Source of the DNA: Mytilus trossulus
Lineage: Eukaryota
Direction: 5' to 3'
Length of the DNA stretch: 64,000 nt
Assembly (NCBI RefSeq): GCF_036588685.1
Contig: NC_086384.1
Span: forward strand, 59,210,001 to 59,274,000
A model generated the notes under the pieces. The model was not told where the DNA came from. It saw only the letters and a program-made list of their open reading frames with translations, and did no database searches. Below, one piece after another: positions 1 to 43,775 of this stretch. A program made the position numbers and the translations under genes. Every line of letters begins with the position of its first letter. The stretch's first letter is position 1.

Positions 1-3000
1 ACCAAAGTGGTAAATGTCCGTTTACCATTATACATACTGATCTTTTCTCAAAACTTCTGTGTGCCAAAGTGGTAAGTGTCCGTTTACCATTATACATACT
101 GATCATTTCTCAAAACTTCTGTGTGCCAAAGTGGTAAGTGTCCGTTTACCATTATACATACTGATCTTTTCTCAAAACTTCTGTGTGCCGAAGTGGTAAG
201 TGTCCGTTTACCCTTATACATACTGATCATTTCCCAAAACTTCTGTGTGCCAAAGTGGTAAGTGTCCGTTTACCATTATACATACTGATCATTTCTCAAA
301 ACTTCTGTGTACCAAAGTGGTAAGTGTCCGTTTACCGTTATACATAATGATCATTTCTCAAAACTTCTGTGTACCAAAGTGGTAAGTGTTCGTTTACCAT
401 TATACATAATGATCATTTCCCAAAACTTCTGTGTACCAAAGTGGTAAGTGTTCGTTTACCATTATTCATACTGATCTTTTCCCAAAACTTCTGTGTACCA
501 AAGTGGTAAGTGTCCGTTTACCATTATACATACTGATCGTTTCCCAAAACTTCTGTGTACCAAAGTGGTAAGTGTCCCTTTATGGTTATACATACAAATA
601 ATTTCCCAAAACTTCTGTGTACCAAAGTGGTAAGTGTCCGTTTACCATTATACATACTGATCATTTCCCAAAACTTCTGTGTACCAAAGTGGTAAGTGTC
701 CGTTTATGGTTATACATACAAATAATTTCCCAAAACTTCTGTGTACCAAAGTGGTAAGTGTCCGTTTATGGTTATACATACAAATAATTTCCCAAAACTT
801 CTGTGTACCAAAGTGGTAAGTGTCCGTTTACCATTATACATACTGATCATTTCCCAAAACTTCTGTGTACCAAAGTGGTAAGTGTCCGTTTATGGTTATA
901 CATACAAATAATTTCCCAAAACTTCTGTGTACCAAAGTGGTAAGTGTCCGTTTACCATTATACATACTGATCATTTCCCAAAACTTCTGTGTACCAAAGT
1001 GGTAAGTGTCCGTTTATGGTTATACATACAAATAATTTCCCAAAACTTCTCTGTACCAATGTGGTAAGTGTCCGTTTACCATTATACATACTGATCATTT
1101 CCCAAAACTTCTGTGTGCCAAAGTGGTAAGTGTCCGTTTACAATTAAACGTACTGATCATTTCCCAAAACTTCTGTGTACCAAAGTGGTAAGTGTCCGTT
1201 TACCATTATACATACTGATCATTTCCCAAAACTTCTCTGTACCAAAGTGGTAAGTGTCCGTTTACCATTATACATACAAAAAATTTCCCAAAACTTCTCT
1301 GTACCAAAGTGGTAAGTGTCCGTTTACCATTATACATACTGATCATTTCCCAAAACTTCTGTGTACCAAAGTGGTAAGTGTCCGTTTATGGTTATACATA
1401 CAAATAATTTCCCAAAACTTCTGTGTACCAAAGTGGTAAGTGTCCGTTTACCATTATACATACTGATCATTTCCCAAAACTTCTGTGTACCAAAGTGGTA
1501 AGTGTCCGTTTATGGTTATACATACAAATAATTTCCCAAAACTTCTGTGTACCAAAGTGGTAAGTGTCCGTTTACCATTATACATACTGATCATTTCCCA
1601 AAACTTCTGTGTACCAAAGTGGTAAGTGTCCGTTTATGGTTATACATACAAATAATTTCCCAAAACTTCTGTGTACCAAAGTGGTAAGTGTCCGTTTACC
1701 ATTATACATACTGATCATTTCCCAAAACTTCTGTGTGCCAAAGTGGTAAGTGTCCGTTTACCATTATACATACTGATCTTTTCTCAAAACTTCTGTGTGC
1801 CAAAGTGGTAAGTGTTTGTTTACCATTATACATACTGATCATTTCCCAAAACTTCTGTGTACCAAAGTGGTAAGTGTCCGTTTATGGTTATACATACAAA
1901 TAATTTCCCAAAACTTCTGTGTACCAAAGTGGTAAGTGTCCGTTTATGGTTATACATACAAATAATTTCCCAAAACTTCTGTGTACCAAAGTGGTAAGTG
2001 TCCGTTTACCATTATACATACTGATCATTTCCAAAAACTTCTGTGTACCAAAGTGGTAAGTGTCCGTTTATGGTTATACATATAAATAATTTCCCAAAAC
2101 TTCTGTGTACCAAAGTGGTAAGTGTCCGTTTACCATTATACATACTGATCATTTCCCAAAACTTCTGTGTGCCAAAGTGGTAAGTGTCCGTTTACAATTA
2201 AACGTACTGATCATTTCCCAAAACTTCTGTGTACCAAAGTGGTAAGTGTCCGTTTACCATTATACATACTGATCATTTCCCAAAACTTCTCTGTACCAAA
2301 GTGGTAAGTGTCCGTTTACCATTATACATACAAAAAATTTCCCAAAACTTCTCTGTACCAAAGTGGTAAGTGTCCGTTTACCATTATACATACTGATCAT
2401 TTCCCAAAACTTCTGTGTACCAAAGTGGTAAGTGTCCGTTTATGGTTATACATACAAATAATTTCCCAAAACTTCTCTGTACCAAAGTGGTAAGTGTCCG
2501 TTTATGGTTATACATACAAATAATTTCCCAAAACTTCTGTGTACCAAAGTGGTAAGTGTCCGTTTACCATTATACATACTGATCATTTCCCAAAACTTCT
2601 GTGTACCAAAGTGGTAAGTGTCCGTTTATGGTTATACATACAAATAATTTCCCAAAACTTCTGTGTACCAAAGTGGTAAGTGTCCGTTTACCATTATACA
2701 TACTGATCATTTCCCAAAACTTCTGTGTACCAAAGTGGTAAGTGTCCGTTTATGGTTATACATACTGATCATTTCCCAAAACTTCTGTGTACCAAAGTGG
2801 TAAGTGTCCGTTTATGGTTATACATACAAATAATTTCCCAAAACTTCTGTGTACCAAAGTGGTAAGTGTCCGTTTATGGTTATACATACAAATAATTTCC
2901 CAAAACTTCTGTGTACCAAAGTGGTAAGTGTCCGTTTATGGTTATACATACAAATAATTTCCCAAAACTTCTGTGTACCAAAGTGGTAAGTGTCCGTTTA

Positions 3001-3628
3001 TGGTTATACATACAAATAATTTCCCAAAACTTCTGTGTACCAAAGTGGTAAGTGTCCGTTTATGGTTATACATACAAATAATTTCCCAAAACTTCTGTGT
3101 ACCAAAGTGGTAAGTGTCCGTTTATGGTTATACATACAAATAATTTCCCAAAACTTCTGTGTACCAAAGTGGTAAGTGTCCGTTTATGGTTATACATACA
3201 AATAATTTCCCAAAACTTCTGTGTACCCAAAGTGGTAAGTGTCCGTTTATGGTTATACATACAAATAATTTCCCAAAACTTCTGTGTATCAAAGTGGTAA
3301 GTGTCCGTTTACCATTATACATACTGATCATTTCCCAAAACTTCTGTGTACCAAAGTGGTAAGTGTCCGTTTATGGTTATACATACAAATAATTTCCCAA
3401 AACTTCTGTGTACCAAAGTGGTAAGTGTCCGTTTACCATTATACATACTGATTATTTCCCAAAACTTCTGTGTACCAAAGTGGTAAGTGTCCGTTTATGG
3501 TTATACATACAAATAATTTCCCAAAACTTCTGTGTACCAAAGTGGTAAGTGTCCGTTTTCCATTATACATATTGATCTTTTCCCAAAACTTATGTGTGCC
3601 AAAGTAGTAAGTGTTTGTTGACCATTAT
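1..3628 (+). repeat. 62-bp tandem satellite (~58 copies, truncated by window start); each unit carries AAAGTG|GTAAGT, a consensus splice donor
   Basis: Unit ACCAAAGTGGTAAGTGTCCGTTTACCATTATACATACTGATCATTTCCCAAAACTTCTGTGT; two main variants; 1054-bp (17-unit) higher-order duplication. Confidence 0.97.
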
Positions 3629-3721
3629 TCGGCTCACTTCCTTTGGTGTTTTGCACTGTGCATCAGCTGATTTTTTGTAATGAACTGATGCACCATATCC
3701 TTTATTTATTATGCATCACCA

Positions 3722-4117
3722 AATAGACCACTTTCGAGTTCATCCGTCACCGGAAAAAACTCGTAAATTATACGCGCCTTTATCATCGTCATTTGTGCGT
3801 TTAGGGGCGTCGTCACTTCCTTCCAATGTTGAGCGAGTGGTTGGAAAACTATAATTCTATCTTGTACGAATTATTCGGCAAATTGAATTCTCAAAATTGA
3901 CAATCAACACGGCTGTCATTAGAGAAATGTCAGTAAGTACCTACAGAGCAACCATTATTTCTAGTTTATCCTGCACAAAGACGATCACTAAGACGCTTGA
4001 TGAACGTAAATAGTGCAGGGATACAGGCGAGCCCCTCTATCTGATAAATGACGTCAGAAAGGCGTGTATAATTGACGAGTTTTTGCCGGTGACGGATGAA
4101 CTCGAAAGTGGTCTATT
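3722..4117. mobile_element. MITE with ~60-bp terminal inverted repeats
   Basis: AATAGACCACTTTCGAGTTCATCCGTCACCGG at the left end, its reverse complement at 4086-4117; no ORF. Confidence 0.85.
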
Positions 4118-4632: not shown

Positions 4633-4848
4633 AAATTTGGAGGTGTACGGAGAGACTTGGGCTTATGCGAGAGAAGTATACGTAATTTCGAAAAAAGTGA
4701 AGAGCCCGGATTAAACGTAAACAAAGTAGTAGAAGAAAGATTTCTAGCCAAAAAATTACAAAACTTGAAATCAAAAGACAGCAAAGAACTGAAGAAAATG
4801 GAGAAAGTCATGTCGGAGTTTGAAGAGTTAGGAGGAGAAATAATGAAG
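4633..4848 (+). CDS. Internal exon (phase 0/0) of an unidentified upstream gene: KFGGVRRDLGLC...EELGGEIMK
   Basis: tag acceptor at 4630-4632, AAG|GTTCGT donor, open frame, phase-compatible with the next exon. Confidence 0.6.
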
Positions 4849-5885
4849 GTTCGTACAGACTATCGAGTTTTATAAACATGGTGAGGTGATGAAATGTCGA
4901 AGGTTCGTATCGAATATCGGGTTTTCTAAACATGGTGAGGTGGTGAAATAACGTAAGTTCGTATAGACTTTCTGATTTTCTAAACATGGTGAGGTAGTGA
5001 AATATCAAAGGTTCGTATGAATATCGGTTTTTCTAAACATTGTGGTGTGGTGAAATATCGAAGGTAAATATCGAATATCGGGTTTTCTAAATATGACAAG
5101 TTGGTGAAATATCGAAGTTTCAAATTTCGACTTTTGGATTTTCTAACATGGTGAGGTGGTGAAATATCGAAGGTTCGTATCTACTGTTGGACTTTCTACT
5201 TTTGGATTTTCTAAACATGGCGAGGTGGTGAAATATCAAAGGTTCGTATAGACTATCGGGTTTTCTTAACATAACGAGTTGGTGAAATATCGAAGATTCG
5301 TATCGAATATAGGGTTTTTCTAAACATGGTGAGGTGGTGAAATATCGAAGGTTCGTATCGACTATCGGGTTTTCTTAACATGATGAGGGGGTTAACTATC
5401 GAAGGTTTATAAAGACTATCGGGTTTCATAAACATGACGGTGTGGTGAAATATCGAAGGTAAATGTCGACTATCGGGTTTTTTCAACATCGTGGGGTGTT
5501 GAAGTATCAAAGGTTCGTATGTACTGTAAGATTTTTTACTTTTGAATTTTCTAAACATGGTGAGGTGGTGAAATATCGAACGTTATTATCGAATATCGGG
5601 TTTTCTTAACATGGTGAGGTAGTAAAATATCAAAGGTTCGTATAGACTATCGGGGTTCCTAAACATGGTGGTGTGGTGAAATATCGAAGGCTAATATCGA
5701 CTATCGGGTTTTCTAATCATAGCGAGATGGTGAAATATCGAAAGTTCATATCGAATATCGTTTTTTTTTAAACATGGTGTGTTAACAAGGTGAGGTGGTA
5801 AAATATCGAATGTTCGAATAGACTATCGGGTTTTTTTTTTACACAATTTTACAATGTAAGTAGTTAAATATCGAAGGTTCGCATA
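4828..5885 (+). repeat. ~54-bp tandem array (~19 copies) derived from the exon end/donor at 4848
   Basis: Unit GAGGTGGTGAAATATCGAAG|GTTCGTATCGACTATCGGGTTTTCTAAACATGGT resembles exon end GGAGGAGAAATAATGAAG|GTTCGTACAGACTATCG; degenerate copies at ~6140-6260. Confidence 0.9.
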
Positions 5886-8366: not shown

Positions 8367-8470
8367 TTATAAACGTCGAATTAGATCTGTTAGGATGTCA
8401 GAAAACCCATTATTTGCATTCTTTGAGATGTTGAATTTTTTCGTATAATTTAATTACGTCTTGCTCTTAA

Positions 8471-8679: not shown

Positions 8680-8706
8680 TTAATTTAACCTTGTTCACTC
8701 TTGCAG

Positions 8707-11284: not shown

Positions 11285-11337
11285 CTAGCAGCCGAAGGAT
11301 GTCAATGTGGAGCAGCATTCAGGAGATCGTCAATAAT
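11285..11337 (+). CDS. Candidate exon (phase 1/0): (A)SSRRMSMWSSIQEIVNN
   Basis: actaat..ccag acceptor, open frame compatible with the previous phase-1 donor; weak donor GTGTGT. Confidence 0.4.
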
Positions 11338-11590
11338 GTGTGTATACTGCCTGTAATAATGTGTGTATACTGCCTGTAATAATGTGTGTATACTGCCTGT
11401 AATAATTTATGTATACTGCCTGTAATAATGTGTCTATACTACCTGTAATAATGTTTGTATACTGCCTGTAGTAATGTATGTATACTGCCTGTAATAATTT
11501 ATGTATACTGCCTGTAATAATTTATGTATACTGCCTGTAATAATGTGTCTATACTACCTATAATAATGTTTGTATACTGCCTGTAATAAT
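11332..11590 (+). repeat. 23-bp tandem array (~11 copies) starting at the candidate exon end
   Basis: Unit AATAAT|GTGTGTATACTGCCTGT. Confidence 0.9.
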
Positions 11591-16537: not shown

Positions 16538-17012
16538 AACAAAAATGTGTCCATAGTACACCGAAACCCCACTCGCACTCACTATCATTTCTTATGTTTA
16601 GTTGGCCGTGAAAAGGAGGGGCTCTAATTTGGCATTTAAATTAGAAAGATCATATCATAGGGAACATGTACACTAATTTTCAAGTTGATTGGACTTCAAT
16701 TTCATCAAAAACTACCTCGACCAAAAACTTTAACCTGAAATTTACACTATCATTTTCTGTATTCAGTGAACCATGAATTTGGGGGCAAAAGTCTAATTTG
16801 GCATTAAAATTAGAAAGATCATAATTATCATAGGACACACGTGTAAAAAGTTTTAAGTTGACTCCAACTTCATCATAAACTAACTTAACCAAAAATGTTA
16901 ACCTGAAGCGGGACAGACGGACGAACGGACGGAAAGACAGATGGACAGACGAACGAACGCACGCACAGACCAGAAAACATAATGCCCCTCTATCATCGTA
17001 GGTGGGGCATAC
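16538..17012 (-). mobile_element. HINE-like element, same family as 58335-59076
   Basis: Reverse complement of TATGCCCCACCTACGAT...GGGGCATTATG, (GGAC)n tract, internal repeat. Confidence 0.75.
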
Positions 17013-17430
17013 AAAGTATCCCTCTTAGAGTTACAGTAAGGCATTTGACATGGAGCAAAGTTCCAATTGATTGCAAGACCATGTAAATGATAATAAAAAA
17101 TATTACTTTTTAATATTAAAAACGGGCAACAAAATAAAACAAACTATGGACGGACTATATCCGTTTATTTATCAATGTTTACGTGTATAATAGTTTATTC
17201 ATAATGTTTTGTTTGTTATAAATGAATGAAATATTGATCTTCTTTAAAAATATTTTAATATTATAGAAATATATCTAACATAAAATAAAGTCTTAATATC
17301 AACTTTCACGAACTATGACATTTTATTAAAAATATTTCAATCCTCCTGACAGTCTTTAAATTTAATATTCAGTTGGAACAAGATAATTTAATCTATAAAT
17401 ATTCGTTAGTGTGTTTTTGAAACTTTTACT

Positions 17431-18325
17431 ATGATGTGTTCAAAAAACGTTTACAGGATCTTTTTCTGTTTGTTTTTTGATTTTTTCAACTTATTCAAGT
17501 TTGCACTAAGTGGAGCTCCAGCAGGGTGTGCGTTGGACGACACGGCCAGTTTGATTGGTCGTTTTGATTGCGAGTTTAATTCTGTATCTTTCCCCCTTGT
17601 AATGACAGATTTCTCCTCTCCAGATCCACAAAGAATCCGGATCTATAACGTATCAGGAACGTTAAGTTCTCCGTCATTTTCTGGATTCAGTTCATTCAAT
17701 ACAGGAACAATAGATACTGACTACCCAACGTTACTAGAAATCGAATGTGTTAATGGCGGAACATTGGATATAAGTGCCGGAACGTTTACGGGTATGGATT
17801 ACATCCAGGAATTCTATATCACCAATTGTGTTATACCCGACTTACCAGATAACGTTTTCACCGATTTCGGAACGCTGAATTATTTCAAGATTGAAGGAGG
17901 TTCTATTGGAGTTACTCAAACCAACAGTTTAAATGGATTAAATGTTGCAAGGTCTAGTTCACCCACTCCACTAGGAGCATTCATAATCTACAACTCTCCC
18001 ATCATTACTGGAGAGCTGGCATCTGGTTTCCTAAACCCTTTGACAACGGTAACAACAATCATGCTGAAGAATACTGGCCTAGATTCTATAGAAGCCAATA
18101 TGTTCTCCCAAAATACATTAGTCCGTAACTTAAGTATTGCAGGAAACAATTTTCAAGTGCTTCCCACCAACATATTTTCTGGATTAGATGCGCTAATGTT
18201 TCTAGACATGAGTGATGTCCCCTTTAATTGTAGTTGTTCTAATGCTTGGTTTCTTGATTATTTAGTTGAACATGACATCAGTATAGTGGGAGCAGCTGTC
18301 TGTAGCGAGCCTTCGTCGTACAATT
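17431..18325 (+). CDS. LRR transmembrane paralog 1, exon 1 (signal peptide + LRR ectodomain + LRRCT start); full protein ~467 aa
   Basis: LxxLxLxxN repeats (LVRNLSIAGNNFQVLPTNIFSGL), LRRCT PFNCSC; phase-1 donor AATT|GTAAGT. Confidence 0.9.
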
Positions 18326-21300
18326 GTAAGTGCATACTCCAATAGCGAGCCTTCGTCGTACAATTGTAAGTACATACTCCACTACCGAGCCTTCGTCTTA
18401 CAATTGTAAGTACATACTCCACTAGCGAGCCTTCGTCATACAATTGTAAGTACATACTCCACTAGCGAGCCTTCCTTATATAATAGTAAGTACATACTCC
18501 ACTAGCGAGCCTTCCTTATATAATTGTAAGTACATACTCCACTAGCGAGCCTTCCTCATACAATTATAAGTACATACTCCACTAGCGAGCCTTTGTCATA
18601 TATTTGTAAGTACATACTCCACTAGCGAGCCTTCGTCATACAATTGTAAGTACATACTCCACTAGCGAGCCTTCCTTATATAATTGTAAGTACATACTCC
18701 ACTAGCGAGCCTTCGTCATACAATTGTAAGTACATTCTCCACTAGCGAGCCTTCGTCATACAATTGTAAGTAAATACTCCACTAGCGAGCCTTCGTCATA
18801 TAATTGTAAGTACATACTCCACTAGCGAGCCTTCGTCATATAATTGTAAGTACATACTCCACTAGCGAGCCTTCGTCATATAATTGTAAGCACATACTCT
18901 ACTAGCGAGCCTTCGTCATAAAATTGTAAGTACATACTCCACTAGCGGGCTGTCGTCATACAATTGTAAGTACATACTCCACTAGCGAGTCTTCGTCTTA
19001 CATTTGTAAGTACATACTCCACTAGCGAGCCTTCGTCATACAATTATAAGTACATACTCCACTAGCGAGCCTTCGTCATACAATTGTAAGTACATACTCC
19101 ACTAGCGAGCCTTCGTCATACAATTATAAGTACATACTCCACTAGCGAGCCTTCGTCATACAATTGTAAGTACATACTCCACTAGATGGCCATCTTTGTG
19201 TAATTCTAAGTACATGCTCTACTAGCGGGCTATCGTTATATATTGATAAGAACATGCTCTACTAGCGGGCTATCGTTATATAATTATCAGAACATACTCC
19301 TCTAGCGGGCTATCGTTATATAATTTATAAGTACATACTCCTCTAGCGGGCTATCGTTATATAGTTATTAGTACATAATCCTCTAGCGGGCTATCGTTAT
19401 AAAATTAAAAGTACATACTCCACTAGCGGGTCATCTTTATATAATTATAAGTACATACTCCACTAGCGGGCTATCGTTATATAATTATAAGTACATACTC
19501 CTCTAGCGGGATATCGTTATATAATTATAAGTACATACTCCTCTAGCGGGCTATCGTTATATAATTGTAAGTACATACTCCTCTAGCGGGCTATCGTTAT
19601 ATAATTATAAGTACATACTCCTCTAGCGGGCCTCCGTCGTACAATTGTAAGTTCATACTCCACTAGCGGACTATCGTTATATAATTATAAGTACATACTC
19701 CTCTAGCGGGCTATCGTTATATAATTATAAGTACATACTCCTCTAGCGGGCTATCGTTATATAATTATAAGTACATACTCCTCTAGCGGGCTATCGTTCT
19801 ATAATTGTAAGTACATACTCCACTAGCGAGCCTCCGTCGTACAATTGTAAGTTCATACTCCACTAGCGAGTCTTCGTCGTACAATTGTAAGTACATACTC
19901 TACTAGCGAGCCTTCGTCGTACAATTGTAAGTACATACTCTACTAGCGGGCTATCGTTATATAATTATAAGTACATACTCCTCTAGCGGGCTATCGTTCT
20001 ATAATTGTAAGTACATACTCCACTAGCGAGCCTTCGTCGTATAATTGTAAGTACATACTCCACTAGCGAGCCTTCGCCGTACAATTGTAAGTACATACTC
20101 TACTAGCGAGCCTTCGTCGTACAATTGTAAGTACATACTCTACTAGCGGGCTATCGTTATATAATTATAAGTACATACTCCTCTAGCGGGCTATCGTTCT
20201 ATAATTGTAAGTACATACTCCACTAGCGAGCCTTCGTCGTACAATTGTAAGTACATACTCTACTAGCGGGCTATCGTTATATAATTATAAGTACATACTC
20301 CTCTAGCGGGCTATCGTTCTATAATTGTAAGTACATACTCCACTAGCGAGCCTTCGTCGTACAATTGTAAGTACATTCTCCACTAGCGAGCCTTCGTCGT
20401 ACAATTGTAAGTACATACTCCACTAGCGGGCTATCGTTATATAATTATAAGTACATACTCCTCTAGCGGGCTATCGTTATATAATTGTAAGTACATACTC
20501 CTCTAGCGGGCTATCGTTATATAATTATAAGTACATACTCCTCTAGCGGGCTATCGTTCTATAATTGTAAGCACATACTCCACTAGCGAGCCTCCGTCGT
20601 ACAATTGTAAGTTCATACTCCACTAGCGAGCCTTCGTCGTACAATTGTAAGTACATACTCCACTAGCGAGCCTTCGTCGTACAATTGTAAGTAAATACTC
20701 TACTAGCGAGCCTTCGTCGTACAATTGTAAGTACATACTCTACTAGCGGGCTATCGTTATATAATTATAAGTACATACTCCTCTAGCGGGCTATCGTTCT
20801 ATAATTGTAAGTACATACTCCACTAGCGAGCCTTCGTCGTACAATTGTAAGTACATACTCTACTAGCGAGCCTTCGTCGTACAATTGTAAGTGCATACTC
20901 TACTAGCGGGCTAACGTTTTATAATTATAAGTACATACTCCTCTAGCGGGCTATCGTTCTATAATTGTAAGTACATACTCCACTAGCGAGCCTTCGTCGT
21001 ACAATTGTAAGTACATACTCCACTAGCGAGCCTTCGTCGTACAATTGTAAGTACATACTCCACTAGCGGGCTATCGTTATATAATTATAAGTACATACTC
21101 CTCTAGCGGGCTATCGTTATATAATTGTAAGTACATACTCCACTAGCGGGCTATCGTTATATAATTGTAAGTACATACTCCTCTAGCGGGCTATCGTTAT
21201 ATAATTATAAGTTCATACTCCTCTAGCGGGCTATCGTTCTATAATTGTAAGTACATACTCCACTAGCGAGCCTCCGTCGTACAATTGTAAGTTCATACTC

Positions 21301-22454: not shown

Positions 22455-22517
22455 TACAAAGAGCGACAATATTCCAAGATGAAAACTGTCCTTATGATCC
22501 TTGTGGAAATATCCCAG
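22455..22517 (+). CDS. Paralog 1 exon 2: (L)QRATIFQDENCPYDPCGNIP(G)
   Basis: tttcag acceptor, CAG|GTCAGT donor, phase 1/1, Cys pattern shared with the other paralogs. Confidence 0.85.
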
Positions 22518-30361: not shown

Positions 30362-31023
30362 TTTATCGCTATTTTGTGCATTTTTCCTTTGATCTTTTTT
30401 TGTGATAATTTTCATATCATGCTTCTCGCTTGATATGGAAAAATTATTGCTAGAAACTAAGGAGGCCACGTGGCGTTGTTAACGAAATTGACATTGAAAT
30501 TGACAACGTCGTCATAGGTAAAATAGCGATAAAAAGATTATCATTGGTCATCTCAACTCGATTGCTTTTCTCACTTTCGCTGCTCCAGCTCAAGCGAGAA
30601 AATCAATCTCGTTGAGATAATCAACGATAATCTATAAGTACCACTCATTAAAGGCTGATAACTGTGTTCTCGGAATAACTGATTATCATGATTCATATTT
30701 ATGGATTTTAACGGGGAAAATATCTAAGAATGATGTGTAACCTGGAGACTTGATGCATATACACATATCTCTATATACTTTCAGGGTTTGTTCATTAATA
30801 TAATCTCCTAAACATAATAAATATTAGACTTAATTACTTGTTTCCATAATTTAAAAACTTACTTACACTTATGGATTAAAGGATTAAGGCGATAATAAAA
30901 GATTAACATGTTTTTATATAGAAATGGTTCAATATTTACAGTATAGATCCGACATCAGCCAATTTTGGAAAATGGAGGTGCGAATGTAAAATTATTCCGA
31001 ACACGAAATCAGAAAAATTTAAA

Positions 31024-31903
31024 ATGTTGATGTTGTTAGTGGTATTGTTGTGTGGCGCTGTGATGGTGAAAGGCGCAGCACAATCTGGATGTACTTACGT
31101 TGATACAGATGGTTCAGCCCGAGGGGTATACGAATGTGATTATCTATCGGTCTCTCTTCCTTTGTCGTATTCATCCTTCTCTAGTCCGATCCCACAAAGG
31201 ATGCAGATTTATAATGTTCATGGACAACTTCCTGCCAGTAACCCAACATCGACTTTTTCAGGTTTTTCTGGAATGGGAACACTTGATCCCGATTATCCAG
31301 CGTCTCTAGAAATACGCTGCTCCACAGGTGGCACCCTACTTTTATTCTCGGGAACATTTACCGGGATGTCGTACCTCCAGGAACTATCAATTATCAACTG
31401 TGTCATCAGCAGTGGGTTTACGTCATCAGCCTTCTCAGCCATAGGTTCACTCAATTACTTCTTGGTGTACGGTGGCTCCTTGACCACTCTGGCTAATGAC
31501 GCCTTTACCGGTCTCGATATACAGAAGCTAACCACCGTTCCAGATCCGAAAGGAGAACTAGCTATGATTGGTGTTACGTTACCTAGTACAACTTTACCAC
31601 AAGGACTATTGTACTCGCAGACTAATTTAGTTAGCGTAGTACTGGACAATCTCGGACTAACCGTCGTAAGGGCAGATGATTTTTCTCAGAATTTTTTACT
31701 AGAGAAGATTTCACTACAGTACAATGCATTTACCGAGATTTCCTCCACGATCTTCGATGGCCTTGACCTACTATTGAGTGTGAACTTGATGGGAACTGAA
31801 TGGAATTGTTCGTGTGAAAATATCTGGATCGTCAATACGGCGAATGCAAGCGGATACGAGATAGAGACCGGATATACATGTACCACACCAGCGCTGTATG
31901 AAA
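31024..31903 (+). CDS. LRR transmembrane paralog 2, exon 1; full protein ~401 aa
   Basis: Signal peptide MLMLLVVLLCGAVMVKG, LRRs, WNCSC LRRCT; phase-1 donor GAAA|GTAAAT. Confidence 0.9.
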
Positions 31904-32703
31904 GTAAATATAATTGTTTATAAAAAAAAATGAAGATGTGGTATGATTGCAAATGAGACAACTCTCTACCAAACAACAACAATTTAACTGTATTTTGTAA
32001 ATTAATTTGAATTGAATACTTTGTAAATAAATTTGAATTGAATAATATGTAAATGCATTTGAATTGAATAATTTGTAAAAAATCAAAGTAATTATATATA
32101 AATAAGAAGATGTGGTATGATTGCCAATGAGAAGGTTCTCCATAAGAGATCAAATGACACAAGTATACATAGGTCACCGTATGGCCTTCGCAAATGAGAA
32201 AAAAAACACATACAGCATAGTCAGCTATAAAAGACCCCGACATAACAATGTAAAACAATTCAAACGAGAAAATAATGACCTAATTCATGTACAAAAAATG
32301 AACGAACAACAAATATGTAACACATACGTATGTGACCACTGAATTAAAGGCTCCTGACTAGGGCCAGGCACATACATACAGAATGTGGCGGGGTTAAACA
32401 TGTTAGCGGGATCCAAACCTTCCTTAACCTGGGACAGTCGTGTAACAGTACAACATAAGAACGAACTATAAAAATCAGTTAAGAAACTCATCAGACGGAT
32501 AAAAATACAAATACTACTAATACAAGTGGACGTGGCCGGGTACTTGTACATCCCAACAACAAAAAACACTAAGAACAGATAAGACAGTACTCGCAGTTAC
32601 TGACAGCTAGTTCAAAGCCACTAACAACTAACCAAAATTGACTGCATCTAAGACGAAATATGTAACACTATATAGGTTAATGTATATTGTTTTCTATTGA
32701 CAG

Positions 32704-32772
32704 AAAGGACAGGAAAAGAATACTACATCAAAGAATGTGAAATCCCTGATCCTTGTATCACGGAGGGCAAAG
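32704..32772 (+). CDS. Paralog 2 exon 2: (K)RTGKEYYIKECEIPDPCITEGK(G)
   Basis: ttgacag acceptor, AAAG|GTAAAA donor, phase 1/1. Confidence 0.85.
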
Positions 32773-34010
32773 GTAAAAATCTTAATCTCTGATCCCTTAT
32801 TACGATGGGCAAACATACAAGTTTTAATCCCTGATCCCTGTATCACGGAGGGCTAAGATAAACGTCTTAATCCTGATCCGTGTATCACGGAGGGCAAAGA
32901 TAAAAGTCTTAATCCTGATCCCTGTATTACGGAGGGCGAAGGTAAAAGTCCTAATTCTTGACCCCTGTATCACAGAGGGCAAAGGTAAACGTCTTAATCC
33001 CTGACCCTTGTATCACAGATAGCAAAATTAAGTCTTTATCCCTGATCATTGTATCACAGAGGGCAAAGGTAAAAGTCTTAATCCCTGATCCTTGTATCAC
33101 AGAGGGCAAAGATAAAAGTCTTAATCCCTGATCCCTGTATCACGGAGGGCTAAGATAAACGTCTTAATTCTGATCCGTGTATCACGGAGGGCAAATATAA
33201 AAGTCTTAATCCTGATCCCTGTATTACGGAGGGCAAAGGTAAAAGTCCTAATTCTTGACCCCTGTATCACAGAGGGCAAAGGTAAACGTCTTAATCCCTG
33301 ACCCTTGTATCACAGATAGTAAAATTAAGTCTTTATCCCTGATCATTGTATCACAGAGGGCAAAGGTAAAAGTCTTAATCCCTGATCCTTGTATCACAGA
33401 GGGCAAAGGTAAAAGTCTTAATCCCTGATCCCTTTCCACGGTGGGCAAAGGTAAACTTCTTTATCTCTGATCCCTTATCACGGAGGGTAAATGTAAAAGT
33501 CTTAATCCCTGATCCCTTATCACGGAGGGCAAAGGTAAAAGTCTTATTCCCTGATCCCTTATCACGGAGAGCAAAGATAAAAGTCTTAATCCCTGATTCC
33601 TTGTCACGTAGGGCAAAGGTAAAAGTCCTAATTCCTGATCCCTGTATCAGAGAGGGCAGGAAAAAGTAAAGATTTAAATCTCTTCATACAGTTTTTTTTT
33701 GCACTTGTATCACGGAGGGCAAATGTAAACATCAAAATCCCCGACTCTTGTATCACGTAAAAGTTTGAACCCCTATTTTTGCTCCACAGAGGACACAAGT
33801 AAAAGTTCAAATCCCCGAATTTTTGAACACGTAAGGCATTGTTAAAACGTTGAACCCTTGTGCATCATATTCAAGGAGCAAAATTAAGGTAACTCTTAAA
33901 ATCCCTGATCTTAGAATAACAGAAGGCGAAAAGATATACTTCGATCCACTGCTCTAAGACGGCAGAGATCAATATATTATAATCCCTGATCATAGTAATA
34001 CGAAGGGCAA
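32741..34010 (+). repeat. 43-bp tandem array: last ~32 nt of paralog 2 exon 2 + donor; decays distally
   Basis: Unit ATCCCTGATCCTTGTATCACGGAGGGCAAAG|GTAAAAGTCTTA; ~297-bp higher-order duplication. Confidence 0.95.
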
Positions 34011-34461
34011 AACTAAGGAAGATTTAGTTATTAAGAAAACGCTGACTTCCTTTCCTTTTTCTTCAAAGCAACATTCTGCATTTTGAACTTTTCAGGTGTT
34101 TGCATGGATTAATGTGTAGAAATATAACTTTCAAATTGTTCTTTCTTTTTAAGTAAGTGGTCATTGATTTTTTTAACATATATAAACGCCGTAAACTAGT
34201 ATAGCCAAACATTGTTTCGTCTAAATCATATTATAAAATATGTAAAAAGTGAAAAGTATAACATCAATGAGATACTCAACTCACAATAAAAAATAATTGA
34301 AAAACGAGGAGAGATGTTAAACTACAAGACTAAATCAACTTGTATATAGAAGAGCAAAGACCTCCACCTACAAACTTTATTACTGCTTTAATTTTATTCA
34401 TGTCACAGTTTTTTTCCGATAAAATGTATTTAATGTCATGGACCTAAATTGTGTATTGCAG

Positions 34462-34718
34462 GTTTCCGTTGGGGAGTGGAATGTTTTATTCTATACAATA
34501 TAATAGCGTATGCAGTATTGTTGTTTACCTTAGTTATTGGAGCTTTAGCTTTAGCAATAGTATGCCATGTTAGACGAGATCTAATTACTGACAGAGAAAG
34601 ACTGATGAAAAAGAGGAATATTGCATGGATGAAAGTACAACAAGCTCTTCTACATGGAGGTGGGGGTGGTCAGAGACCCCCTGCATCGACGGCTCCGCCC
34701 ATGCGAAAGGGATGGTAG
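34462..34718 (+). CDS. Paralog 2 exon 3: TM + tail
   Basis: ttgcag acceptor; IIAYAVLLFTLVIGALALAIVC; KKRNIAWMKVQQALLHGG. Confidence 0.88.
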
Positions 34719-35467
34719 CAGAGACATATGCGTAAGGAAGGTAGCAGAGACCTAAGCTCCGCCCATGCGTAAGGGATGGTAGCAGAGACATTATAAAAAC
34801 ACTATATTATTCTCGTTGAATGTACACTATCTATTGTGACAGTTAAATGTAAATAAATCTTTGAAAATTGTCTTTAAACGTGCTCTGCCTACTTGTGTAT
34901 GATCACAAACAAATATTGAAGACCTGCTGGTGACCTTCTACTGTTGTGTTTTCTATGATCGGGTTGTTGTCTCTTTGACACATTTCCCATTTCCATTTTC
35001 AATTTTATTTTTACAAAAGTGGTTGTTCCAGTTATTGAATTATACTAGAAGTTCAGGCATACATTCAAGACGAGAAACACATTAATCCTGAGAAATTGTT
35101 AACATAAAGGTGGATTCTGCAAAGTGGGTAGAATGAAAGGAGGGGCATTTAAACTGCCTCTCGAAAAGGGAACCAGAATAGTACCCTTGTCAAACGGCCA
35201 CCAGTAGTACTAATTGTTTCTTTAAAGGACCAAACACTAAGATTATTACATACACATACACTGATGAGATTCAGAAACTTTGAACTAGAAAATGTAAATT
35301 AACATTTGGTAAAGATAAATTTAATACAATGAACACTTTCCTTCTATTTGTTTGATTTATAAAATGAAAAAAAAGACCCTGGATGCCATGATGATCTGTA
35401 GATGTATACATTTATAGATGTATTTAGGTTTTGTGTCGTTTTAATGTTGCGTAATTTATATGTTCTA

Positions 35468-36049
35468 CTAGAAAACACCCGTGATATCGCGGGTCCGTGA
35501 CTGAATTTATAAAGTATATAACTATTCGCAAGCCTTATTTCAGTAATATTATTGTCATCTGATAAAGTCATACTGATTATAAGATACACAGTTTTCTCTG
35601 CTTTCAAATCTTTCTGTTTGAACCCGTAGAACTGGAACTGTGATTAGTATTCGTATTGTTATCTTAGAAAAGCTTACTGATTAAAATACTACAATAGGTA
35701 ACAATTTGACAATGGTTGATGGAATTTAGTAGTGTCAACCCTGTGATAATGACCCGTGTAATTAGCAGTAAATATACCGTTTGGTGGTGCGCCTGTCAGA
35801 TGCGGAACGTACAGACAAGGTAATAGGTAACAGGTGAATATACTATTGGTATCGGTATCGGACTCGACACGGAACTTCTGAATTATTGGCATTTATTAAT
35901 TACTTGGAAAACAAAAGGGCCTGGAGTGGTGTAATTTTTAATCTACACCTTTGTACTATATTAGTTATATATTTAGTTGAATTCTTTGATTCGTTGTTTT
36001 TACGTGATGACGGCTGACAAATTGAACCTCGTTATTTTAGTATTATAGA
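35468..36049 (-). mobile_element. Non-autonomous Helitron
   Basis: On the minus strand: starts TC, ends CTAG preceded by hairpin CCCGCGATATCACGGG, inserted between A and T. Confidence 0.8.
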
Positions 36050-38078
36050 TATATATGTCCCGTTTTATTCATTTAGAGGAATGCTGAATAAATATAAGTT
36101 CTGTCGAAGTATATTTACCCTCGTTATTACGAATTCAAATGTAACAGATTTATTAAGAAAGAATAAATCACACTGATGATGCCACGCAGACAAAAATACA
36201 TCATGCTACCCCTGTTAGGTTATGACCATTTGATATTAGGAATGAGAGTGAGGAGGGTTATTTGATATTCTAGTGGGGTGAAGTGGCGGATTCAGGGGGG
36301 CGTAGAGGGCGTACGCCCCCCCCTTTGCTCCTCGGACTTTTTTTTTTTGTAAAATTATTTATCAGACTAGACTTCATGAAATTTGCCATTTCCCGAGTAT
36401 TTAATTTTTATACGACAATTCTTTACTTACAAAGATATTTTTCGGTGGTATTTTCTGATTGTCAAAGTCATGTGATTTGCTATGGTGGAGTTGACCAGTG
36501 CGTTGAAAAAACGGCACACGGTCATTTTGAAATTAAAATTACAGTAATAAACATTGCTAAGGCTGAGGATGTCATGGCAATCAGAAAACCTTCAAAGCAA
36601 CACAGGATTGAGCAAGAACGTATTGACTTCTATTTCAGTATTCCACCAAACAGAAAGTAATAGTAAATACTCTATAGACTATTGCACTCTCAAGAAAAAG
36701 AAAGTTCCACAATATTATTTACCTACGAAAACATGTTTAACGCCAAATGCACCAGCTTATTTTGAAAATAACAAAGTTGAATAATGAACCCCTGTCACTC
36801 CGCCGCATTTTTGCGCTTGTTCCAAGTCAGGATCGACCGGAGCCTCTGGCCTTTGTTAGTCTTGTTTTATTTTATTTTTAGTTTCTTGTGTACAATTTGG
36901 AAATTAGTATGGCGTTCATTATCACTGAACTATATTTGTCAAGGGACCAGCTGAAGGACGCCTCCAGGTGCGGAAATTTCTCGCTACATTGAAAACCTGT
37001 TGGCGACCTTCTGCTGTTGTTTTTCTGTGGTCGGGTTGTTGTCTCTTTGACACATTCCCCATTTCCATTCTCAATTTTAGTATAAGCTCTAGAAAATTTC
37101 AAGTCTCAGGTAGGACCATTTGATTTGATGAGACAGTCTTAGATATTTGAGAGAGAAAAATTGACTCTGATTCTTGTCTTAAACAAAAATTCTGAACCGT
37201 ATCTGGATTGAAAACAATAGTCTTGTCCAGTTTTTTGCTATTAAAAACGAAAATTTCTTACAAAATTATTTAGCATGAAATGAACATGATGAAAAAAACG
37301 GGCGTAGTTTTTTTGTGGCCGGGGTTTGCGTGTCTGACTTGAATGTCTGTTTCGCCGGACTTATATATATTGAATACTTTGTAACCTGCCTACTGGGTGT
37401 GACCTTTATGTCTCCATTTGTCGACCATCATTCTAAATTAGTTGTCATTTCAGACACTTTCGTAATCTTTGGGGGATTTGGAACCCCTCACTTCGGTTCT
37501 CTAAGTTATGTTGGGTGAAACATATCAATCAAACATTTTGATAAAAACTGCTTGTTTGTCTTTTTTAACTCGTGTTGGTCGTATTGTAAATTTCATCGAA
37601 TGTCCATGTCCATAAAAATGTCCAACCCTTACACTTTTAATACAGCAACTATAAAATATACAAGCCCCAAGCCAAGGAACCGTTTAAATTGTGCATATTA
37701 CACTTATTTTATGTTTTTTAGCCGAAAAAAGGTCCTAAAAATTTAAACTCTTCGCCCCCCCTTTCCAAAATCCTGGATCCGCCCCTGGGGTGGGTGCAGT
37801 ATTTGCTGATTGACCATTCACCGTCATCTGCTTCTACACTTGCTATGCTATGTTTAGGGTTAGGGTTAGGGTTTTCCCACCTGAACACAGAATTCCTTTT
37901 ACAGTTTTCCTGCCGAAGGTCGTCGGTCTTCTCACACACTCACTCCGGTTCCCTTCATTAAAACTGGACCCCATAATAAGCTGTCTGAAAGTGGTATTTG
38001 AAACCATTAAATAAACAAATCTACGATAGTGATCATCTCAAACAAAACAAAAACCTAATATAAAACGTCGAAAGAGAT

Positions 38079-38150
38079 AGCCGTGGTGTAGTGGTTAGTG
38101 CATGCATCGGACTACTAACACAAAGGTTCCTGGTTCGATTCCTGTTCGGG
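38079..38150 (+). mobile_element. tRNA-derived SINE head or tRNA pseudogene
   Basis: Box A TGGTGTAGTGG and box B GGTTCGATTCC; cloverleaf not intact. Confidence 0.55.
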
Positions 38151-38235
38151 ATCTAAGAATGGATGGGCAGTTCAAGTTATCTGAAGGACTGTTAAATTCA
38201 AAGCAGAATATGTAATTGACTTTATAATGGTAATC

Positions 38236-39246
38236 AAAAAACTAGATATCATTGAGATGGAAGCCATCTCTGTGGGCCCCGCTGTCAATAACGTTGGGTA
38301 AATAAATATAGTGTGAATCAAAATTGTAAGCGATGGACAGACCAACAGACAGACAGACCTTTGACCTAGGAAGTTGTACATACATCATGACACACCCTCT
38401 GGTGTTGGTTAAAATGGATGTCAAGTATAATATTTGAAATCATAACGGTTCCCAAGATATAGAGCGGACACAATCTTCAACTCAGGACACAGGGTTGTCA
38501 ACTCAAACCAAAGTTTTTTTTACCTTGACCTTTGACCTAGGAAGTTGTACATACATCATGACATGCCCTCTGATGGTGGTTAGAATGGATGTCAAGTATA
38601 AACTTTGAAATCAAAAAGGTTATCCAGATATGGAGCGGACATGATCTTCACCACAGGACACAGGGTTGTCAACTAAAACCAAAGTTTTTTTTACCTTGAC
38701 CTTTGACCTAGGAAGTTGGACATACATCATGACATGCCCTCTGATGGTGGTTAAAATGGATGTCAAGTATAAACTTTGAAATCATAAAGGTTATCCAGAT
38801 ATGGAACGGACATGATCTTCACCACAGGACACAGGGTTGTCAACTGAAACCAAATTTTGACCTTGACCTTTGACCTAGACAGTTGTACATACATCATGAC
38901 ACACCCTCTGGTGTTGGTTAATAAACATGTTAAGTATTAAGTATAAAATCATAACGGTTATCTAGATATGTAGCGGACACGATCTTCATCACAGGACACG
39001 GGGTTCTCAACTGAAACCAAAGTTTTTTTTACCTTGACCTTTGACCTAGAAAGTTGTACATACATCATGACACGCCCTTTGGTGGTGGTTAATAAACACG
39101 TAAAGTATAAAGTATGAAATCATAATGGTTTTCTAGATATGGAGCGGACACAAAGTTAAAGTGTTACGGACGGACGGACGGGCAGACGGACGGACGGACA
39201 GACTGATCACTATAGGGCAACCCGACTAAAGTCGGAGCCCTAATAA
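38236..39246 (-). mobile_element. HINE-like element with ~175-bp internal tandem repeats
   Basis: ~5 copies of GACCTTTGACCTAGGAAGTTGTACATACATCATGACA..., (GGAC)n tract, terminal hairpins. Confidence 0.75.
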
Positions 39247-40377
39247 TTTAAAATTTAGGACTGCCAATCATAACTCTTACGAATTCGAGTTCATACTAAA
39301 ATAACGGTCTGTTTAATGTACAAAACGAGAAACAACTGATGTATAGCAAACAAAGGTCAACCACTAAGTTATACGCTTCAGAACTGCGACAGGCACGTTC
39401 AATAAAAGGTTATATTAAACATGTTTTCTGGTGCCGATTTCCACTCACCCATAGCCAATGGCAGTTCAAAATCAGGCTCTGCTCAAGAATATTCCATAGA
39501 GTAAATACCTCTGCAATAGACAGAAGCATAAGACAATTGACTGCGTATGCATGATTGTACCCCAACAAGAAATCTGACTATTTAAGCCTTCATTCAACAT
39601 ATCTTTATAATTGGTTATTATGTTGTACTGTTACACTGTTTCCAATGGCTAGGGGAGAGCTGAAATCGGCACCAGAAAACATGTTTAACATAACCTCTTA
39701 TTGAACGTGCATGTCGCAGTTTTGAATGTTATAACTTAGTGGTTGACGTTTGTTGCTATATATCCGTCTGTTTTCGTTTTGTCACAGCAAATTATAAAAA
39801 TCAGTTGAAAAAAGCTGAAATCGTCAGATGGAAATATATCTAACAAAACACAGATAAGACGTGGACAGGTACTTGTACATCCCAACAACAAAAGACAGTA
39901 AGTACAGATCTCAGAGTCGTTGCATTTACTGAAAGCTATTAATTTAGAAAAAAAAAAACATAAGCATAAGCAATCAAAGACAAAAAACATGGCATCGTGA
40001 AATTATTCGTTTGATCCGGAAACAATGATCAGAGCTTGTAGACAATGTTTTTTTGGGTCTTTATATTTTATATCACATTGTAATAACAAGATTTCTTGCT
40101 GGGTTACAATCATGATTTAAGGCTTCTGTCATTTGCAGATGCATTTACTCCAATTGAATATTCTTGAGCAGAGCCACCTTTGAACTGCCATTGACAGAGT
40201 AATGTGTTGTTAGGATACTGTCGTGTGCAAGGTCAATAAGCTGAGGTATTGTCTTATATAAGTAGTCCCCAATTCTTTGTCGATCTTAAGGTGTTTCAAA
40301 ACTTTTTTCGGCTTTCTATTTGGCTCAAACATTGTTTTTCATTTGTTTCTACAAAATTCATTTCTTATCTTTTTAAC

Positions 40378-41580
40378 GATGAAAAAAGTATTGCAACACC
40401 TTGATTTTTTAAAACTTGTAAAATCAGTCTCTTATATTGGATGTAATATGATAAAATATCTGTAAAATAATATTGAAACGTTGTTAATGATAACATTGGC
40501 TTTAAAACGAACAAAACATGTATGAAATTATTTTTTTTATCTAATCAAAATTTTTTTTTACAAAATGAAGTGTTTTTTGTTAAAAAAAAATGCATTTTAC
40601 AACTTTTACTGTAGTCGAACTTTACAATGTTAGACATTTCAAAATTAATCTCTAGGTGATTGTTCACATCATGGTTGATCGCCATACGCCAAAGAATTAG
40701 TACATTGTGCGCAGCCTCCATTCAAATGGATAACCTCATCTTAACGTCTTCTGATTCCTGAAATAAGTCGACTAATGTGTTGCTAAGCTAGCAGCAACCA
40801 TTCTTAACGAGGACTTGTTTGAACTGGGGTGTCCTTTCATGCAATTTACGTCAAAAAGTGTCCCATATATGATCGATATGGTTCAAATTCGGGCTACAAT
40901 TGGGCCAAGGAAGATAAACCGAATTCCATTTGTTCGTAGGCAAAAGTCTCCGAAATGGTATTATCGCACGATAACCGGAAGCGATGAGCCGATCTCGAAC
41001 AGCTCTTGTTTAAAGGCTCCTGTATGGTCATCATTCTCTTTTTAGGATCGTATTGTTTGCAATGGGTTTCCTTCTGACCAACCTTCATTATGCATTATTT
41101 TCCCAAGCAGATGTTACAGCGGGTCTCATTGACCTAGGAAGGTCTTTAACATCGTTTCTTGCCTGGTTTTTATTCCCAAAACGACTTATAGTGGAATGGT
41201 GATGACCAACAATACGTGCAATTATCACAGCGACATACACAATGTACCTGCTTCCCTCATGCTTGATATCTGCCAACTTGCTGAAGTTATGAGTTGCGGA
41301 TGACCAATTACAAGGTATCAATAACATAAACTAATAAACTTGGTTAATAAAGTGTTGAAAACAAAAAGGATAAAAACATCTGTTTTAGTCTTTACGAGTA
41401 CAGTAGCTGCATGTGCAGATAGGAACTGATAGAGTCGGTATTTATTGATTAAAATCAGCTGTTATTTAAATAATGTTTAACTAGTTCTATTTCAAAAATT
41501 TATTTAACAAAAAAATAAAAAGTGTTTTTTTTTAATTTGAATTTCAATTTGGTGTTGCAATACTTTTTTCTATGTGTATA
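40378..41580 (-). mobile_element. Degenerate Tc1/mariner transposon
   Basis: TIR GAAAAAAGTATTGCAACACC (40381) / GGTGTTGCAATACTTTTTTC (41551); transposase remnant HHSTISRF...DVKDLPRSMRPAVTS on the minus strand. Confidence 0.75.
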
Positions 41581-41987
41581 TTTAGAGGTGAATTATCATT
41601 TATTTTTGTTTGTTTACTTTTTTTATTTCAATAGATCTTTCTAAGTTTTTAGATCTTACTGTTTCAATAAGCATGTAATATTTGCCACTACGTAGATGTA
41701 GAGCAGCTAACAATAAAACAATACTTTAGTGCATACCAGGGTTTATTCTTAAATAGAGCAAATACTAATTTGTCACGATTAAAGAATAAACATTCTTAAT
41801 AATCCAGATTAAATATATTTTTGTTAATTGTAAAATGCTACATTAAAGTACAACCGTTATATGTCTATATAATATTAACCAGTTTTATAGGATCAAAGAT
41901 TAGGAATTAAGATCGTTGTTATTTTGAGAAAAAAAATGGCGGACAGAAAATAAGAAAATTAGAGAAACCATCAGGAATATCAGAAAT

Positions 41988-42843
41988 ATGGCCCTTCTTT
42001 TAACCATTCTGATGTTTTGTATCTACAATGGTGATGCAGCGACACCTACCGGATGTACAGGAGATAGTTCCGATAGTTCTATCATTCATTACACGTGCGA
42101 CAAGACAAGTATCGGTGGATCTATCAGTTTCGCTGGATTCACGGATTCTGAGCCACAGAGGCTAACCATCTACAGCGCCAGTGGTACAGTTTCCGCGGGA
42201 ACATTTAGCGGTTTCAGCGCATTTAGTGGTGTTAACTCTGATTACCCGGCAACCCTTCAGTTCCTATGTTCAGGATCACTTACGTTTTCTACAGGGACGT
42301 TCGGTGATCTCGGGTATTTTGAGGAGGTTGTTATCAAAGATTGTACTACTTCTTTGATTGCCAGTATGTTTAATAGTCTTGGAACGGCGAACAAGATATC
42401 GATCAGTGGTGGAACACTATCAACCATTGATGCTGGGACATTCACAAGCCTCGATATCACACCAATATCCACAACAGCAAGTCCAAGAGGAGAGCTGAGC
42501 ATCAAAAACGTAGTACTAACGCCAGGAACATTTCCCTCGACATTCTTTAATCCACTGACGAATATTAAATTCATATATTTGGAGAATCTAGGCCTGACAT
42601 CTGTTGATGCTGCGTGGTTCAGCAGTAACACAGCCCTCGTATATCTGTCTCTGGCTAACAATCAGATCACAACACTCCCGAGTACTATGTTTGATACAAC
42701 ATTGGCGTTACTGTATATCAATTTACACGGGGCTCCTTTGGATTGTACAGATACTAGTACCACTTGGTATTATGATTACACTGTAGCCAACAACATCACT
42801 TTTGACGGAGCAGCTGTCTGTTCAACTCCAGCTGCTGAACAAT
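41988..42843 (+). CDS. LRR transmembrane paralog 3, exon 1; full protein ~380 aa
   Basis: Signal peptide, LVYLSLANNQITTLPSTMF LRR; phase-1 donor CAAT|GTAAGT. Confidence 0.9.
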
Positions 42844-43775
42844 GTAAGTAATCACTTGGTATTATGACTACGCTGTAGCCAATAACATCACTTTTGACGG
42901 AGCAGCTGTCTGTTCAACTCCAGCTGCTGAACAATGTAAGTAATCACTTGGTATTATGACTACGCTGTAGCCAATAACATCACTTTTGACGGAGCAGCTG
43001 TCTGTTCAACTCCAGCTGCTGAACAATGTAAGTTGTCACTTGGTACCGTATAGCGGGTTATTTTCGCGGGGTGCAAATTTTCGCTTATTTTCGCGGACAG
43101 AACTTAATCGACAAAATAAATTCCGCCAAATTAAAAGTGTACATACAAAGGTATTAATAAAAGTTTTTAATCCGCCAAAATAATAACCGCCAAAATATTT
43201 CGTATACCTTGTTCAATGAAAATCGCGAAATTTTACATCCGCGAAAATAACCCGCTATACGGTATTATGATTACGCTGTAGCCAATAACATCACTTTTGA
43301 CGGAGCAGCTGTCTGTTCAACTCCAGCTGGTGAACAATGTAAGTTGTCACTTGGTATTATGATTACGCTGTAGCCAATAACATCACTTTTGACGGAGCAG
43401 CTGTCTGTTCAACTCCAGCTGCTGAACAATGTAAGTTATCACTTGGTATTATGACTACGCTGTAGCCAACAACATCACTTTTGACGGAGCAGCTGTCTGT
43501 TCAACTCCAGCTGCTGAACAATGTAAGTAATCACTTGGTATTATGACTACGCTGTAGCCAACAACATCACTTTTGATGGAGCAGCTGTCTGTTCAACTCC
43601 AGCTGCTGAACAATGTAAGTTATCACTTGGTATTATGACTACGCTGTAGCCAATAACATCACTTTTGACGGAGCAGCTGTCTGTTCAACTCCAGCTGCTG
43701 AACAATGTAAGCTATCACTCTGTATTATGATTACACTGTAGCCAATAACATCACTTTTGTTGAAGCAGCTGTCAT
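42761..43775 (+). repeat. 92-bp tandem array (~9 copies): last 83 nt of paralog 3 exon 1 + GTAAGT + 3 nt
   Basis: Unit starts CACTTGGTATTATGA at 42761, 42853, 42945, 43037, 43348, 43440, 43532, 43624, 43716 (last copy diverged and partial). Confidence 0.97.
43046..43262. mobile_element. Tc1/mariner-type MITE inserted in the 4th 92-bp unit
   Basis: Perfect 24-bp TIR CCGTATAGCGGGTTATTTTCGCGG, TA duplication, empty site visible in neighbouring units. Confidence 0.92.

Follow-up and report, generated by a model that had tools for sequence, protein, structure and literature searches.

The 64,000-nucleotide stretch of Mytilus trossulus DNA analysed here (contig C12:59210001-59274000 of a 1.3 Gb assembly; hereafter the window) holds five of eleven tandem paralogues, all on the + strand, that encode leucine-rich repeat (LRR) membrane proteins. 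The subject of this work is a set of head-to-tail arrays of short repeats in this gene cluster, several of which start in the last bases of an exon and run, splice donor included, into the following intron. From sequence, protein and Pfam searches, each paralogue specifies a small membrane protein in three exons. Exon 1 carries a signal peptide, the LRRs (Pfam LRR_8) and an LRRCT cap; exon 2 is a micro-exon of ∼65 nt with a Cys-x5-Cys motif; and exon 3 supplies a transmembrane helix and tail. In all ten of the paralogues that were read, exon 1 is followed by an intron at the identical place and in phase 1. A second copy of the entire cluster, with unique flanks 92–98% identical, is carried by contig C39, and from its sequence appears to be either a haplotig or a recent duplicate of the C12 locus.

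Exon ends were set from annotated proteins by searches of one exon at a time, and arrays were located with Tandem Repeats Finder (TRF); the cluster beyond the window and its counterpart on C39 were read as well. Within the window the arrays have periods of 23–92 bp and 8.7–91 copies. The original prediction made on this DNA had listed six arrays, all of which TRF recovered at the places given. It had also taken the unit to be an exon end plus its donor, in four genes from two unrelated families. That composition stands, with protein-defined exon ends, for the 40-, 43- and 92-bp arrays, and is unsupported for the 54- and 23-bp arrays, whose exon calls found no backing. As a result the second family is unsupported, and what is demonstrated is three genes (A, B and C) of one family. 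Paralogues D and E have no arrays.

Arrays at exon ends in genes A, B and C

The largest of the three arrays lies in gene A. Exon 1 of this gene (17431-18325, +), with its signal peptide, LRRs (Pfam LRR_8) and LRRCT domain, is 100% identical to the M. trossulus protein model LOC134693795 (P0001), and its authentic donor GT stands at 18326-18327. The 40-bp array (18303-21947, +; 91 copies by TRF) has a unit composed of the last 23 nt of exon 1, GTAAGT and a further 11 nt of intron, and it occupies all except ∼500 bp of intron 1. By tblastn, this protein model from the same species splices position 18325 onto exon 2 at 22455. The remaining exons, located with P0001 in the same way, are micro-exon 2 with its Cys-x5-Cys motif (22455-22517, +) and exon 3 with the transmembrane helix and cytoplasmic tail (23297-23743, +; 100% identity).

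Use of the first donor in gene A is also supported by one of the contigs from four public runs, which were placed on exon 1 and the first 12 array units. These contigs span 17290-18331 and leave the 250 bases further upstream uncovered, and coverage that begins at ∼17290 in this way fits RNA, although the RNA nature of the runs is a guess. One such RNA-like contig (X2 record 16) matches gene A up to 18325, after which its next 55 nt map elsewhere; the break at 18325 is the first donor of gene A. Just upstream of the gene, at 16560-17039, there is a repeat with a (GACG)n-like tract, which has very high depth and many different joints in the four RNA-like runs, and which is probably an abundant transcribed mobile element.

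In gene B the array lies one intron further on. Exon 1 (31024-31903, +; LRR) is 96% identical to the M. californianus protein LOC127732366 (P0006); its donor is GTAAAT, and there is no array at it. Residues KRTGKEYYIKECEIPDPCITEGK of P0006 map to micro-exon 2 (32704-32772, +), and the 43-bp array (32741-33658, +; TRF period 42/43 bp, 21.7 copies) repeats the last 32 nt of this exon followed by GTAAAAGTCTT, the donor there beginning GTAAAA. The 96%-identical M. californianus protein includes the micro-exon. Exon 3, with the transmembrane helix and tail, was placed by tblastn at 34455-34718 (+; start approximate). When the array is compared between C12 and C39, the first nine and the last six units are common to both and one internal block of ∼7 units differs, a single internal difference which is the mark of unequal exchange. 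A segment containing gene B is itself inverted on C39 (window 30638-40481 against C39 2373209-2379807).

Gene C has its array at the donor homologous to that of gene A. Exon 1 (41988-42843, +; LRR) is 98% identical to the M. edulis protein P0012, which is spliced after 42843, that is, at the first donor (GT at 42844-42845). In the 92-bp array (42761-43773, +), each unit joins the final 83 nt of exon 1 to GTAAGTAAT, the latter contributing 9 intron nt. TRF reports it in two parts, of 3.1 and 5.6 units, because on C12 it is split by a miniature inverted-repeat transposable element (MITE; 43044-43264, unstranded), found by an inverted-repeat search, with 37-nt terminal inverted repeats and inserted at a TA within the 92-bp unit. 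The C39 array lacks the MITE and has 7.6 uninterrupted units; the insertion post-dates the array. Searching with P0012 by tblastn placed micro-exon 2 at 44795-44862 (+; bounds approximate, 95% identity) and exon 3, with its transmembrane helix and tail, at 46168-46392 (+; 97% identity). Taken together, the most upstream donor is the one used: this is shown for gene A by the same-species protein and the RNA-like contig, and for genes B and C it follows from orthologue models that are 96–98% identical.

Separate births and copy number across the cluster

Donor arrays of the same construction are present in neighbouring genes. In gene G, a 40-bp unit repeated 78 times consists of the end of the gene's own exon 1 (34 nt) plus exactly GTAAGT, and in gene I a 67-bp unit repeated 46 times joins the end of exon 2 to its donor. 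At the homologous exon 1 donor, the exon and intron portions of the unit are 23 + 17 nt in gene A, 83 + 9 nt in gene C and 34 + 6 nt in gene G. Since these registers differ and each array copies the exon of its own gene, the three arrays were born separately. The prediction that the arrays arose independently is therefore upheld, and a single old array inherited by all paralogues is rejected on the same grounds. We also rejected a transposon-borne or dispersed satellite as the source, since the 40-, 43- and 92-bp units copy their own gene's exon end and the 62- and 54-bp units described below are essentially bound to this locus.

No acceptor-only array had been noted in the original prediction. 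This is true inside the window but fails 3.5 kb past its end, in genes F and G, where mirror-image arrays are found. The gene F array (C12 59277555-59279718; 60 bp, 36 copies) and the gene G array (C12 59294425-59295992; 78 bp, 20 copies) each have a last unit that spans the exon 3 acceptor. The array process is therefore not tied to donors or to U1 sites. Both acceptor units are in frame and free of stops, at 20 codons for the 60-bp unit and 26 for the 78-bp unit, and in gene G the frame stays open across 11 units on C12 and 42 on C39. Judging from the translated units, splicing to upstream acceptors could add hydrophobic repeats beside the membrane helix.

Every array was found in both copies of the locus, with copy numbers 1.2- to 10-fold apart. 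The numbers of units on C12 and C39, respectively, are 91 and 32 in gene A, 21.7 and 16.7 in gene B, 8.7 and 7.6 in gene C, 78 and 236 for the gene G donor array and 46 and 29 in gene I, with 36 and 17 for the gene F acceptor array and 20 and 60 for that of gene G. Units meet at short repeats (TAGC in A, ACAT in G and GTATGA in F), a pattern consistent with seeding of the arrays by microhomology-mediated tandem duplication. Nothing here requires the RNA-templated repair that had been suggested earlier; repeats at the joints and copy-number differences that come in blocks are ordinary behaviour for a minisatellite at the DNA level.

Three further arrays lie in the window to the left of gene A. 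The 62-bp array is seen there as its right-hand 3.6 kb (1-3628, +; 58.5 copies by TRF), with GTG/GTAAGT in each unit and the GTAAGT kept in 51 of the 52 units scored. The whole array begins 10.2 kb upstream of the window and runs over C12:59199765-59213628 (∼13.9 kb, ∼224 units), compared with 1.4 kb and 23 units on C39. Searches of the genome's own DNA put its left edge 35 nt ahead of the first GTAAGT in both locus copies, which fits a donor-anchored array with a candidate parent exon. The 62-bp unit is restricted to the locus and its C39 counterpart, but for a single short match at another place on C39. An element with 60-nt terminal inverted repeats, 95% complementary, occupies 3722-4117 and starts ∼95 bp past the end of this array. 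The 54-bp array (4830-5779, +; TRF) has units ∼77% alike that contain AAG/GTTCGT. C39 carries this locus at 89% identity, and the unit is confined to these two places. Its proposed parent exon (4636-4854) had no protein relatives among 1.84 billion representatives and no Pfam match. For the 23-bp array (11332-11590, +; 11.3 copies by TRF), sequence inspection and Pfam searches of the flanking open reading frames (ORFs) gave neither a strong donor motif in the unit nor a supported exon, and no ORF between 3.6 and 17 kb matched Pfam.

Several other features were recorded in the course of the survey. Beyond the window, exon 3 of gene H and the 58-bp array that follows it are present twice, 2.87 kb apart (C12 59302436 and 59305307), as a larger tandem duplication. 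Two very long arrays, of 25 bp repeated 127 times (L004:3479-6649) and 28 bp repeated 164 times (L005:3664-8266), have no known exon edge as anchor; the 28-bp array, whose unit is similar to the first bases of gene I exon 3, stops ∼50 bp before that exon. Within the window, three consecutive ORFs at 48146-52036 (−) match a reverse transcriptase with zinc knuckle, RNase H, a Dam-like methyltransferase and a tyrosine recombinase, the last two below the Pfam curated cutoffs, and are read as a putative DIRS-type retroelement. Satellites of 171 bp (38356-39203) and 169 bp (58389-58990), each adjoining an (ACGG)n or (TCCG)n microsatellite, are not derived from junctions; they resemble the transposon-borne satellites of bivalves.

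Decoy donors, array placement and origin

Most of the decoy donors within the arrays are identical to the authentic donor, and they may be competent for splicing. The consensus is present in 130 of 159 decoys in the gene G array on C39 and in 7 of 8 in gene C. In gene A ∼40% of the units, and in gene B ∼25%, have a dead donor owing to a G to A change at +1; among the 45 units scored in gene A, GTAAGT was present in 23 and ATAAGT in 18. Behind the first donor there is an in-frame stop in each of genes A, B, C, G and I, so that transcripts spliced from a decoy would be expected to stop early.

Such rows of intact donors could mean that the arrays are kept by selection, either as rows of U1 sites that act to hold the transcript or to suppress polyadenylation that comes too early, or as decoys that tune output through unproductive splicing. 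The high proportion of consensus decoys in the 62-bp, gene G and gene C arrays is what this explanation would lead one to expect, as are the lower variability of the donor than of other unit positions in three arrays and the presence of the arrays in both locus copies. However, motifs would be kept in young arrays even without selection, and the dead donors of genes A and B tell against it. Moreover, copy number varies between the locus copies as it does in neutral variable number tandem repeats (VNTRs), paralogues D and E work without arrays, and the acceptor arrays are unable to act through U1. We therefore consider maintenance by selection improbable. Per-position variation within the arrays is no guide to selection, since it is dominated by a few amplified variants.

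The position of the arrays relative to exons was assessed over the 127-kb cluster on C12, where 6 of 11 arrays (periods 25–92 bp) touch one of the 40 internal exon edges. The count rises to seven on C39, since there the array at gene G exon 1 lies directly against that exon. When arrays were placed at random, none of 200,000 placements reached six, and five were reached at a frequency of 1e-5. Thus the proposed link between arrays and splice junctions goes far beyond chance in the cluster. This bears directly on the suspicion that minisatellites are simply abundant and that donor-like ones were picked out by the reader, or that the arrays are artefacts of assembly. Two observations lend it some colour, namely that three of the six cases first listed rest on unsupported exon calls and that plain GTAAGT arrays are no commoner than arrays of the reversed motif (see below). 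Against these stand the placement test (P < 1e-5), exon ends fixed by independent protein models, the occurrence of the same arrays on two separately assembled contigs and the recovery of array units in contigs of the public runs. We regard chance, selective reading or artefact as very improbable, and disfavour it.

To look beyond the cluster, triple occurrences of short motifs at spacings giving periods of 20–50 bp were counted genome-wide, with the reversed motif as control; arrays of higher copy number weigh more in these counts, which cover few motifs. GTAAGT showed no excess (13,474 matches against 14,558 for the control). The donor 8-mers did, exceeding their controls 1.4–1.9-fold: AGGTAAGT gave 550 matches against 290, and on contig C1 formed 11 distinct arrays against 2, while AGGTGAGT gave 225 against 157, with C at −3, as in real donors, in 11 of 19 arrays. 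The acceptor motif TTTTCAGG gave 230 matches against 218, no excess. For the genome-wide enrichment at donors that had been put forward as a check on the original prediction, the 8-mers give modest support and plain GTAAGT gives none. Donor-derived arrays are a real but minor share of the many minisatellites of this genome, and donors outnumber acceptors among them.

These data also bear on the idea, already raised in the original prediction, that mutation is concentrated at exon–intron junctions. Pausing of the polymerase, R-loops or transcription–replication conflicts might stall forks and cause template switching there, or recombination and conversion tracts between diverged haplotypes or paralogues might end where homology ends. 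The strong exon-edge excess in the cluster speaks for such a process, as do the involvement of both donor and acceptor edges, the three separate births at one homologous donor (A, C and G), the donor 8-mer arrays above their controls and the C at −3 in the AGGTGAGT arrays. On the other hand, direct evidence for any process of this kind is absent, the genome-wide excess is modest and missing for plain GTAAGT, and the acceptor 8-mer shows none. Furthermore, germ-line transcription is not a given for immune-type receptor genes. As an account of the arrays as a whole, junction hot spots therefore seem to us rather unlikely.

The reading that we prefer, to which we would give a probability of roughly 60%, is that the arrays are junction-anchored hypervariable minisatellites of the kind known from intron 7 of the human F7 gene, and that they result from tandem duplication, subsequent growth and choice of the first donor. 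In this scheme, a segment of 40–92 bp across an exon–intron junction would be duplicated in tandem between two short repeats, by microhomology-mediated tandem duplication. The duplicate would then expand by unequal exchange or slippage, growth that the copy-number and block differences between the locus copies show. Growth would be tolerated only into the intron, because the exon copy must stay intact. With the exon-proximal site taken by the spliceosome, everything behind it is removed as intron. Use of a decoy would carry a cost, in that the in-frame stop it brings in would send the transcript to nonsense-mediated decay. The mirror form at acceptors would face a harsher filter. That both acceptor units are in frame and stop-free would fit such a filter, if upstream copies are sometimes used.

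Some observations weigh against this reading. Random birth followed by a filter predicts arrays mostly in intron interiors or between genes, yet 6 of 11 lie at exon edges; the excess of births at exon edges over intron interiors is real in the cluster and is left unexplained by the model. The decoy donor motifs are not decaying, and in three arrays they show less variation than other unit positions, although the underlying counts are of non-independent events. Finally, the contig evidence on donor use covers gene A exon 1 and the first 12 units. It is conceivable, if doubtful at about one chance in four, that exon–intron junctions are preferred birthplaces of minisatellites in Mytilus, through instability coupled to transcription or splicing or through recombination tracts, between very diverged haplotypes and paralogues, that end at the exon–intron boundary of homology. 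Were this true, hundreds of introns or more would begin with rows of intact 5′ splice sites, each row numbering tens to hundreds, a natural experiment on donor choice and U1 binding at the scale of a genome.

Relation to known minisatellites and duplications

The original prediction knew of no named mechanism for arrays of this kind. They do have a precedent, because minisatellites whose first monomer lies across an exon–intron boundary have been listed in the human genes F7, 6-16, CBS, LAMIN B2 and PDGF (PMC1557585). In intron 7 of F7, a 37-bp VNTR of polymorphic copy number has 4 exon nt in its first monomer, and of the five pseudo-sites studied, the pseudo-donors are competent, yet the most upstream donor is chosen (PMC1557585). 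Among the others, 6-16 has 25 pseudo-sites, CBS has 15–20 repeats in intron 13, LAMIN B2 has a 100-bp unit and PDGF an 81-bp unit in intron 4; the nearest two pseudo-sites are also used in 6-16 and CBS, whereas the authentic site alone is used in LAMIN B2 and PDGF (PMC1557585).

Such single human genes showed that the first of several identical donors is taken. The mussel cluster, with five donor arrays and two acceptor mirror images of up to ∼236 units, offers natural replicates of the same situation. These could serve the questions of how the authentic site is chosen, how a transcript is affected by extended rows of U1 sites and whether exon edges are fragile in the germ line. At a practical level, the arrays disrupt gene prediction and lengthen introns, and they provide highly polymorphic markers in immune-type receptor genes. 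In the literature searched there was no report of such arrays in mussels, nor of their clustering, recurrence at homologous donors or genome-wide excess; work on intronic minisatellites of C. elegans and on the mouse pseudoautosomal region proved to have no bearing on them.

Two kinds of duplication offer partial parallels. Under the model of Rogers, introns are said to be gained by tandem duplication of an exon segment containing AGGT. The mussel arrays are similar in that tandem duplication adds splice signals while the mRNA is unchanged. Creation of an intron by this route was nevertheless ruled out here, as the intron pre-exists at the same place and in phase 1 in ten paralogues, the arrays lie within it and no new intron has been formed. 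Microhomology-mediated tandem duplications have short repeats flanking the unit; selection lowers the frequency of such duplications in coding sequence, and those described are single and evolve mostly neutrally (PMC13167724). The mussel arrays differ from them in having tens to hundreds of units and in being anchored at exon edges.

The closest likeness is thus to the human boundary-spanning minisatellites. As in F7, the first monomer spans the boundary, identical pseudo-donors come after the authentic donor, copy number is variable and the most upstream donor is used. In contrast to F7, the mussel arrays have 8 to ∼224 units and include 23–83 exon nt, arrays have arisen independently in several genes within a single cluster, and mirror acceptor arrays lie nearby. 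With 6-16, CBS, LAMIN B2 and PDGF the mussel arrays share their anatomy, but those genes are single, scattered and unrelated cases, unlike the mussel cluster. The kind of array is therefore known, and in the mussel cluster it is unusually dense and recurrent.

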